Of a stretch of DNA of 64,000 bases, positions 11,001 through 16,030 are shown piece by piece. Positions within the stretch are counted from its first letter, which is position 1, and every line of letters starts with the position of its first letter. The notes beneath the pieces are model-generated. The model was not told the DNA's origin and ran no database searches. It saw only the letters and a program-made list of their open reading frames with translations. The stretch covers positions 10,701,010-10,765,009 of the forward strand of contig MU055600.1 of NCBI GenBank assembly GCA_013239625.1, in the 5' to 3' direction. The position numbers and the translations under genes were made by a program. Source of the stretch: Lama guanicoe (taxonomy: Eukaryota).

Positions 11001-14000
11001 TCGCTAGAGGTCTGCCATGGCCCACTTCCCCAGAGCCCCTCTCCACCACCATACCTGGAAGTTCTCACGGATGTCCTTCATGCTACCCTTGACAAACAGC
11101 TCACGAGGCTCCTTCTCTAAGGGGGACCCCCCCACATAGAGACTGTGCACGTCCGCCAGATTATTGACACTGCTGATGTCCAGCCAGTCCCAGGATGAGA
11201 TCTGGAGGCCAGAGCAAGGGCCACAGCAGATCAGCTTGGCCTCAAGCCAGACAGGCCGGCTGGTGAGAGGGCCCCAAGCACCCTGCTCCAGTCTCCCCAA
11301 GTGCTCTCACCGCTGGGCCATTGGCTTTGCTCTGGGATTTCTGGCCTCGCTGTGCAGGGTGCCGGGCCTTGTGCTTGCCCTGCCTGGCTGCCATCCACAG
11401 GCTGCGCTGGAAGCTGCTTAGCCCTGAGATGGCCATGTGCATGCTCATGGTGTCCAGGAAGCGCATGCGGGAGCCCTGAGGAGGGGAGAGACTGCGGCTG
11501 AAGAGCCAGCCCACCACTGCTTCAGTGCTTTGGCCCACCAACCCTACCTCGGCCTCCCCTCCACCCAGGAGAGGCCTGCCTTCTCAAATCCTAGCCACTC
11601 TTGAAGATGCAGGCCTGGCTCAATCCCAACACACAAGTCCTTGCCAGCATCTAGCAACAGCTCTGAGGGGCATCTTGGGAAGACAGTGGCCGAAACTAAG
11701 CCTTCCAAATGATGAGGCTCGGCCCCCAGCCCCAGACCTGCCACTCACAAGCTCGGCGGCCCTGGGCAAGTCACCAAGGCTGTCTGAGCCTCAGCACCCT
11801 CAGCTAGAGGCCAAGGCTGCTCTCAGCTGCCCTGCCTTTCTCCTACAGCACTTTTCATAAAATAAAGAATTGCCACAACTACACACCAGACATGGTTCTG
11901 AGTGTTTGCCATGTGTACTGTTCAAACCTTCCCAACAAACCTATGAGGTAGCGTATTTTACAAATAAGGAAACTGAGGCTCAGGGATGTTAAGAAGCTCA
12001 TGCTGCTCATCAGCGGCTGAGGCAAGATGTGAGCCCAGGCTGTGGGTCCCAGAGCCTTCAAAGACCCATGCTAAGCTCTAAAACGCCACAGAGATAAGGG
12101 CCATTAGTACTGTGACAACTTAGGTCCTATGCCAGGCAGAGCCTAACGACAGAACAGCTGGCACAGGGACCAGAGGCAGGGCTGGTCAACAGAAGGCCCT
12201 GTCACTGCTACAAAGGCAATGGAGGCACTGGCCAGGAAAAGCAATGCCTTCCCTCACCACTGAGATCAGGGCTCTTAGCCCACCCCACGCCAGAATCTGC
12301 AGTTGGCCCCAGGAACCTTACCTGGATCAGGTACTGCTCCCTGATATGTGCTCGGTCGAAGCAAACATTGTGCCCCACCACTAGCTGCTCCTGCCAATCC
12401 CGCTGGGTGGGGCCGCCAGCACTGGCAGGGACCTCCAGGGGAATGAGGTCAGCCGGCGACAGCTGGCTGGTCCAAGAGTAACGCTCTTCCACCAGCCGCC
12501 GGCTGCACCAGGAATACCTGAGGGAGGCGAGAGACAGGCAGATTCAGCTCGGAGGCCCTGAAGTTCTGCCGCACAACACCCACTGCACACCTACCACCAC
12601 ATGCCAGGTCCTGCACTAGCAGCTGGGGACACAAGTGAGACCAAGGGGTGCTCCTAACCCTCACAGAGCTAGAGCTCAAGTGGGGTGGTTTGGGGGTGTG
12701 CGGCTGGGGGCAGGGAGGAGTTACAAAAACTTCTTTACTTTTCACTTCCATAGACAGAAGTGGAGCTAAGTGCCCCAGCACCAGGAGTCCCAGACAGGCA
12801 TTCAGCCTGGGCCACCGAGGGGTTTATTAGGTCCAGGGCTCACCAAGTCTATACTTGGCTCCGAGGTGTCTTGATAAACAGTATCAACTCCTCGTGCCCA
12901 AAAGCAAAAAATGGCTAATGTTCAAAGTACAAGTAAAGGAGAGAGATGATTATAAAAGAACCCAAAGTGGAATTTTTTAATTGAAGTGGCAAAAAAAAAA
13001 AAAAGACAAATGCTGCACACATGTACAGGATGAATCATCTGACAGCTGGAAAGACTCTGAAGGACAAAGAGCAAATCATGCACCTTATAGAAGGTGCTAT
13101 GCCTCTGAGCAACCACCCTCAGTGAGAGACCAGGGAAAGTGCCAGAATGGAGGAAATACACGCACATGTGCTAGGGGTTGGGGTAGGAGGGACAGGGAAT
13201 GTGTGCTGCCTATTGGGGGCCTGACACTGATTCAGGACAAGGCTGGAGTCTGCTCAAGACCCATAAGGCTAAGTGTGGGGAAAATGGCCACTGAGCAGAA
13301 GCCTTTTGCAAACCACAGATTACACCAAAGGGCCAAGGCCACTCAGCATCAAAGTGAGTGACGAGGCCATGTGTGTGGCCACCACAGCTGCAAAGGAGCT
13401 CCCTGCTTCCCTTATGGAGGGGAGGAGGGGTTATCTGCCACAACAGTTACAACAAACATAGAATAAGTTTCTCTGTGGGAGAAGGCAACCAGCAAAAAGA
13501 GGTTCCTAGCTTTAAACCTGGTAAAATCTAACTCACACTCCAAATGGTGGGAATATGTACAGGGACTCAACCTGAAACCTCCTCCCCTTTCAGTTCAGCA
13601 CCTCAAAGCCCTTAAAAACAACACAGAAGTAAAGGCTAAAGAATGTCAAATATCTGAGGCCAAGGTGATGACAGGGGCTTGAGTTGCAGTAAAAAGCCCA
13701 GGTCTGCAGCTATGCACGAGAACCATCTGGGTAAATTTAGTTGTGATAAAAAAGAAAACCAAAATGCAAACACCTTTGGCAAATTTAAGATGATTCAGAA
13801 CCAATGAGATTAACACTACACTTTTCCTGTGACTCTTAGATCACTGGTGACAGCCTGTGCAATGTTCCCCTGATCTGATGACCAAAGCCCTTACCAGCAG
13901 CCTTTGGGAAGCTGTTCTATGAGCTGTCCAAGGCTTCCCCCTCCCACTGGAAACTGCAGGCTGCTCAGGTACCCAGGTACCTGATGTGACGCAGCCACAT

Positions 14001-15975: not shown

Positions 15976-16030
15976 GGTTGGTGCAGGGAGCCCCCCGATG
16001 GGAGTCAGGACACCTGGCTTTGGACTCCAG
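12449..16030 (-). CDS. POLGARF: POLGARF / ORF-Y: CUG-initiated overlapping ORF in the -1 frame relative to POLG, spliced over exons 2-3 (~246 aa)
   Basis: GCCAAG-CTG-G start at 16030. 169 stop-free codons to the gap at 15523 ([36 protein letters not shown]...), then the exon 3 segment ending at TGA 12449. The middle ~165 nt are in an N gap. Confidence 0.85.
14790..14992. mobile_element. MER20-like hAT-Charlie DNA transposon remnant
   Basis: cagtgcttctcagctggggg...gggatgctg...agaattcttctgcccaaaat...gaaacact resembles MER20 termini and body. Confidence 0.5.
15524..15975 (-). CDS. POLG: POLG exon 2 coding part, visible portion (mitochondrial targeting sequence, short Gln tract, [10 protein letters not shown]...QAQLPP)
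   Basis: CCAACC-ATG start at 15975. Exon 2 acceptor tttag|G puts the first exon base at 16135. Donor lies in gap 15344-15523, estimated ~15359. Confidence 0.95.

Follow-up and report, generated by a model that had tools for sequence, protein, structure and literature searches.

The POLG locus raises the question of whether its mRNA encodes, in addition to the mitochondrial polymerase, a second protein that starts at a CUG codon and is read in the -1 frame. Such a protein, named POLGARF or ORF-Y, was described in 2020 (10.1101/2020.03.06.980391; PMC7059407), in papers that also report its conservation among placental mammals. The arrangement is therefore already known, with nothing new about the system itself, just as the preliminary description of this DNA had said. 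The question here is whether the same arrangement is present in the window, the 64-kb stretch of DNA that was analysed. On the evidence set out below, the locus is in all likelihood the POLGARF (ORF-Y) ortholog of a non-human placental mammal, a product of an estimated ~246 residues encoded in the -1 frame of POLG exons 2-3.

The host gene and its reading frame

POLG is encoded on the minus strand of the window, where stop-free stretches resembling polymerase gamma can be followed from ~16000 to ~1850. The main reading frame is identified by a match to the mitochondrial polymerase exonuclease domain (Pfam PF18136, DNApol_Exo), to which the POLG-frame translations of both exon 2 (from the ATG at 15975) and exon 3 (from 12516) align. 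The visible part of exon 2 reaches profile position 43, and the match of exon 3 starts at profile position 101. Exon 3 itself begins at 12517, behind a pyrimidine tract and the AG at 12519-12518. Since the POLG frame that matches PF18136 begins at 12516, base 12517 completes a split POLG codon as its third base and at the same time opens a -1-frame codon. The features of the overlap are collected in Table 1.

Table 1. Features of the POLG/-1-frame overlap, with positions in the window
Feature	Position	Strand	Remarks
Exon 2 5' leader before the CUG	16031..16136	-	acceptor AG 16138-16137; -1 frame without stop or AUG
23-codon AUG uORF (ORF-Z of Khan et al.)	16042..16113	-	ATG 16113, G at -3, G at +4; TGA 16044-16042
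CUG start codon of the -1-frame ORF	16028..16030	-	context GCCAAG-CUG-G, -3A/+4G
Possible hairpin with internal loops	15980..16014	-	begins at +14 relative to the G of the CUG
POLG AUG, main frame	15973..15975	-	ATG read directly; Pfam-matched frame
Visible exon-2 part of the -1-frame ORF	15524..16030	-	169 codons, 0 stops
Assembly gap	15344..15523	.	180 N, length only estimated; the exon 2 donor and the exon's 3' end lie within it
Exon-3 part of the -1-frame ORF	12449..12517	-	22 codons, beginning with exon base 1; stop TGA 12451-12449

The start region

From the C of the CTG to the A of the POLG ATG the distance is 55 nt, which leaves 52 nt between the two codons, and for this reason the CTG reads in the -1 frame. 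The preliminary description had given the same 55-nt distance, the same frame and the same sequence context, and both the measured distance and the letters on the minus strand agree with it. In human POLGARF/ORF-Y, the conserved CUG likewise stands in the -1 frame, 52 nt before the POLG AUG, and is flanked by a critical -3A and +4G (10.1101/2020.03.06.980391; PMC7059407).

Immediately upstream is a short AUG-initiated uORF that ends 11 nt before the CUG and that lies in the POLG frame, closed by its own stop codon. A conserved 23-codon AUG uORF (ORF-Z) with -3G/+4G is known just 5' of the CUG in POLG mRNAs (10.1101/2020.03.06.980391; PMC7059407). Upstream of the CTG within exon 2 (from 16135), the -1 frame contains neither an AUG nor a stop codon. 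The predicted second POLG product is missed by annotation that considers AUG codons only, as had been claimed, and the main import of the locus is one of annotation, in that AUG-only gene callers would pass over this product in the present genome.

Downstream of the CUG, the 35 nt of 16014-15980 fold, when taken alone, into a hairpin of -14.2 kcal/mol that accounts for 81% of the ensemble. The stability of this hairpin relative to shuffled sequence is not significant by itself (z = -0.75), and in a longer sequence context a different fold outcompetes it. The hairpin is compatible with the conserved stem-loop, starting 14 nt after the CUG, that has been published for POLGARF/ORF-Y (10.1101/2020.03.06.980391; PMC7059407). 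An origin of the start region from a MIR SINE has also been considered, on the basis of a match that Khan et al. call low scoring (PMC7059407).

Openness of the -1 frame relative to chance

From the CUG down to 15524, at the edge of the assembly gap, the -1 frame is open, and the stop-free, Arg/Gly/Ala/Pro-rich chain of 169 codons quoted in the preliminary description was reproduced. How much weight this openness can bear depends on the standard against which it is judged. In the other POLG exons of the window, the -1 frame contains 30 stops in 892 codons, or 3.4 per 100 codons. At this rate, 5.8 stops would be expected in the 172 visible codons of the overlap, as opposed to the zero that are observed (P(0) = 0.003). 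Exon 2 has a GC3-rich codon usage, with T at 3.3% of third codon positions, and 23.5% of synonymous shuffles leave the -1 frame open when the codon usage of the exon is retained, as against 0.9% when that of the remainder of the gene is imposed. The +1 frame of POLG is stop-free too across visible exon 2 (15524-15971), most likely as a by-product of GC-rich codons. This +1 frame also continues without a stop for 44 codons into exon 3 (12384-12517), farther than the -1 frame does. Many vertebrates, moreover, have no stops in an alternative frame of this POLG exon (Loughran et al., 10.1101/2020.03.06.980391).

As a lone criterion, then, openness is weakly above chance. The preliminary description had implied a greater weight for it, but with nearly a quarter of the shuffles open, and the +1 frame open as well, this evidence is much weaker than was implied. 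The same caution applies beyond this locus, since, where the first coding exon is this GC-rich, an alternative frame that stays open for long is not by itself evidence of coding.

An outgroup was provided by a bird-like POLG (L001, positions 1-1500), the sole yield of one metagenome scan. This very GC-rich gene with short introns is found on JGI metagenome contig Ga0065711_1005441 (34.7 kb), and is presumably host DNA in the metagenome. In its first coding exon, which has the same GC content as exon 2 and 53% identity to it, the -1 frame is interrupted by 2 stops, and the +1 frame is open over a long stretch.

These comparisons bear on the possibility that the -1 frame is open by chance, T-ending codons being rare in so GC-rich a first coding exon, and that it is untranslated or functionless in this species. 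The shuffles that retain the exon's codon usage, the open +1 frame, and the stop-free alternative frames of other vertebrates are what such an explanation would predict, but it leaves unexplained why a CUG with -3A/+4G should stand at the published distance from the AUG, why a 23-codon uORF should precede it so closely, why a stop should follow early in exon 3, and why the third positions of POLG should imply so little divergence from mouse (see below); nor does it sit well with the two -1-frame stops in a bird-like exon of equal GC. A chance frame is thus judged improbable. Identification of the -1 frame as POLGARF rests instead on a combination of features, namely the start context, the uORF, the position of the stop, and similarity to known alternative-frame translations.

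Extent of the frame and the assembly gap

The 3' end of exon 2 is concealed by the assembly gap. Because exon 2 stops at PF18136 position 43, and exon 3 resumes at position 101, the hidden part amounts to the last ~165 nt of the exon, or ~55 of the ~246 codons of the -1-frame ORF. The sequence just below the gap is intron-like, with stops in both frames within 40 nt. A donor at ~15359 and a product of 246 aa had been proposed previously; the two profile positions support both figures, which are nonetheless only estimates for a region that lies within the gap.

Whatever the hidden length, the -1 frame resumes at 12517, because POLG itself must keep its frame across the junction. The earlier claims that exon 3 starts on the third base of a codon, and that the -1 frame goes on from there to 12449, held up on inspection, with a TGA found after 22 codons. 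A -1-frame stop in exon 3 has likewise been published for POLGARF/ORF-Y (10.1101/2020.03.06.980391; PMC7059407). POLG's own frame thereby secures the relation between the two frames, though not the absence of stops, and the -1 frame is probably intact across the ~55 codons of the gap. The most conserved part of POLGARF is its C-terminal 64 residues, which are part of a secreted fragment (10.1101/2020.03.06.980391). The last 22 of these residues are visible here, and the other ~42 (about two thirds) fall in the gap; no ortholog extending into this C-terminal part was retrieved.

With the end of exon 2 covered, a stop codon or a pair of indels in the hidden ~55 codons could have disrupted the ORF, resulting in a truncated product or none, and representing a lineage-specific loss of POLGARF in which the start signals were kept. 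In a small number of mammalian sequences ORF-Y is not intact, possibly through misannotation (Khan et al., PMC7059407). Against such a loss, the ORF, its CUG and its stop are conserved across 58-88 placental genomes (10.1101/2020.03.06.980391; PMC7059407), none of the 191 visible codons is a stop, and start context, uORF and exon-3 stop are all intact. A single frameshift in the gap is ruled out, since the essential POLG frame would not survive it either. Disruption of the ORF is thus considered very unlikely, and the chance is slimmer still for the specific case of a -1-frame stop in the hidden end of exon 2, with POLGARF lost or truncated while CUG, uORF and POLG are intact. Were there such a stop, the species would represent a natural knockout in which to ask what purpose POLGARF serves.

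The product and its relatives

The visible 191 residues of the putative POLGARF ortholog have a pI of 11.97 (12.0), with 29 Arg versus 12 acidic residues, and 67% of the chain consists of Ala, Gly, Pro and Arg. The pI of human POLGARF is 12.05 (10.1101/2020.03.06.980391). In a word-indexed search of 5.8 billion proteins, using as queries either the whole visible part or the N-terminal 48 residues, the same 3 relatives and no others were found with either query, all of them alternative-frame translations of POLG. Of these 3, only 2 (P0002 and P0003) were recovered by a full HMMER pass over 1.84 billion representatives. The mouse relative P0002, deposited as 'polymerase (DNA directed), gamma, isoform CRA_c, partial', is identical at 97 of 124 aligned residues (78%) from the CUG onward, and the product of an ENA contig from another mammal is identical at 94 of 106. 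The third relative, P0003 (ENA, 107 aa), is a human- or primate-looking translation and was left out of the alignment. The alternative-frame product has no family in Pfam and no relative of solved structure in the PDB, which fits with the published de novo origin of the protein.

Similarity between species in the alternative frame is partly forced by the conservation of POLG itself, and even the interrupted -1 frame of the bird-like exon has similar short motifs. A different view of the overlap is given by the third codon positions of POLG, of which at most ~16 in 106 need to differ from mouse, by a rough parsimony count made from protein alone. At neutral sites, ~30-40% would be expected to differ between mouse and another placental order, although this figure is an expectation without a control. 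The low count appears to agree with the excess synonymous-site constraint that has been reported on POLG over the overlap, ending where ORF-Y ends (Khan et al., PMC7059407), and is not a test independent of that report. That this constraint stems from the folding of the POLG mRNA or from a regulatory element within it, rather than from a second protein, is the most improbable of the alternatives, for although the sequence 14 nt downstream of the CUG is able to form a hairpin, the stability of the folds does not exceed that of shuffled sequence, a stop-free frame of ~740 nt that ends where the synonymous constraint ends argues for coding (Khan et al., PMC7059407), and the human protein has been detected (PMC7059407).

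A search of sequencing runs with 15524-16300 yielded 18 runs from 9 studies, of which a single one is recorded as RNA and every one is stored in the form of contigs. Fourteen runs (X1-X14) from eight studies of organism A agree exactly in the share of this segment's words that they contain (0.58), whereas four runs of organism B contain 0.81-0.93. A share this constant points to a single partial piece common to these runs, for instance the transcript of a relative or of a cell line, and the matches to these runs are not evidence of expression or splicing.

Comparison with known dual-coding genes

Every visible feature that defines dual coding of POLG by POLGARF/ORF-Y, as proposed in the preliminary description, fits the locus. 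In common with the human arrangement are the gene and exons involved, the CUG with its -3A/+4G context, the 52 nt to the AUG, the -1 frame and the stop in exon 3, as well as the preceding 23-codon AUG uORF, the possible hairpin at +14, and a basic, low-complexity product with a pI of ~12; similarity to the mouse translation adds to this list. The difference is one of length, with ~246 codons estimated here (~55 of them in the gap) versus 260 in human; a shorter Gln/Ala repeat region, with which the preliminary description equated the 14-aa difference, is a conceivable cause. In the case of mouse P0002, the N-terminal part up to the POLG AUG is of the same length as here; unlike the present ORF, P0002 is partial, and ends before the region that is hidden here and before exon 3. 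In mouse, there is little translation of ORF-Y despite an intact ORF (Khan et al., PMC7059407), and thus an intact ORF is no guarantee of its use.

The locus can also be compared with the triple-coding SRD5A1 gene (PMC13352861), where, as here, several long proteins arise from overlapping frames of one mRNA through the choice of start codon. The two differ in that SRD5A1 uses nearby AUG codons, whereas the putative start here is a near-cognate CUG that would be efficient by virtue of its context and gated by a uORF. One consequence of the overlap is that most POLG-silent changes in exon 2 and at the start of exon 3 would alter the POLGARF sequence.

A possible mechanism of translation

Translation of the -1 frame in this species would follow a scheme whose steps are taken from published human experiments and carried over by orthology. 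Scanning ribosomes would first meet the 23-codon uORF. Those that pass over the uORF AUG, together with some that reinitiate after the uORF, would start at the CUG and produce POLGARF, the CUG being predicted to be nearly as good as an AUG owing to its -3A/+4G context, and perhaps aided by the hairpin 14 nt downstream. Translation would then proceed in the -1 frame through exon 2 and into exon 3, terminating at the TGA at 12451-12449, and ribosomes that reinitiate later would start at the POLG AUG. With some ribosomes starting at the CUG and others at the later POLG AUG after translation of the uORF, it would be the uORF that determines how much POLG is made relative to POLGARF.

The product of the -1 frame is predicted to be a very basic, disordered protein. 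Human POLGARF is disordered, localizes to the nucleolus and binds C1QBP, and a C-terminal fragment of it is secreted on serum stimulation (10.1101/2020.03.06.980391; PMC7059407).

Other features of the window

The window contains ten runs of N, at 122-261, 747-942, 14420-14750, 15344-15523, 47128-47267, 49887-50042, 51286-51473, 53245-53416, 59915-60190 and 60813-61032, which range in size from 140 to 331 N. The gaps may partly conceal the last POLG exons near 700-1000. The gap at 14420-14750 lies within intron 2 and leaves the ORF untouched.

Two tRNA matches were found, each of which could be either a real gene or a SINE-derived copy. A tRNA-Arg (anticodon TCG; 17272-17346, plus strand; 70 bits in Rfam) is positioned ~1.1 kb upstream of POLG exon 2, where it adjoins 16322-16846, a GC-rich region presumed to comprise the promoter and exon 1, and a tRNA-Thr (AGT) of lower score (44 bits) is located at 30545-30613. 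A mir-9 precursor is found on the plus strand at 46506-46583, scoring 78 bits against a gathering score of 58.6; this position would fit conserved synteny with human, where MIR9-3 presumably lies near POLG.
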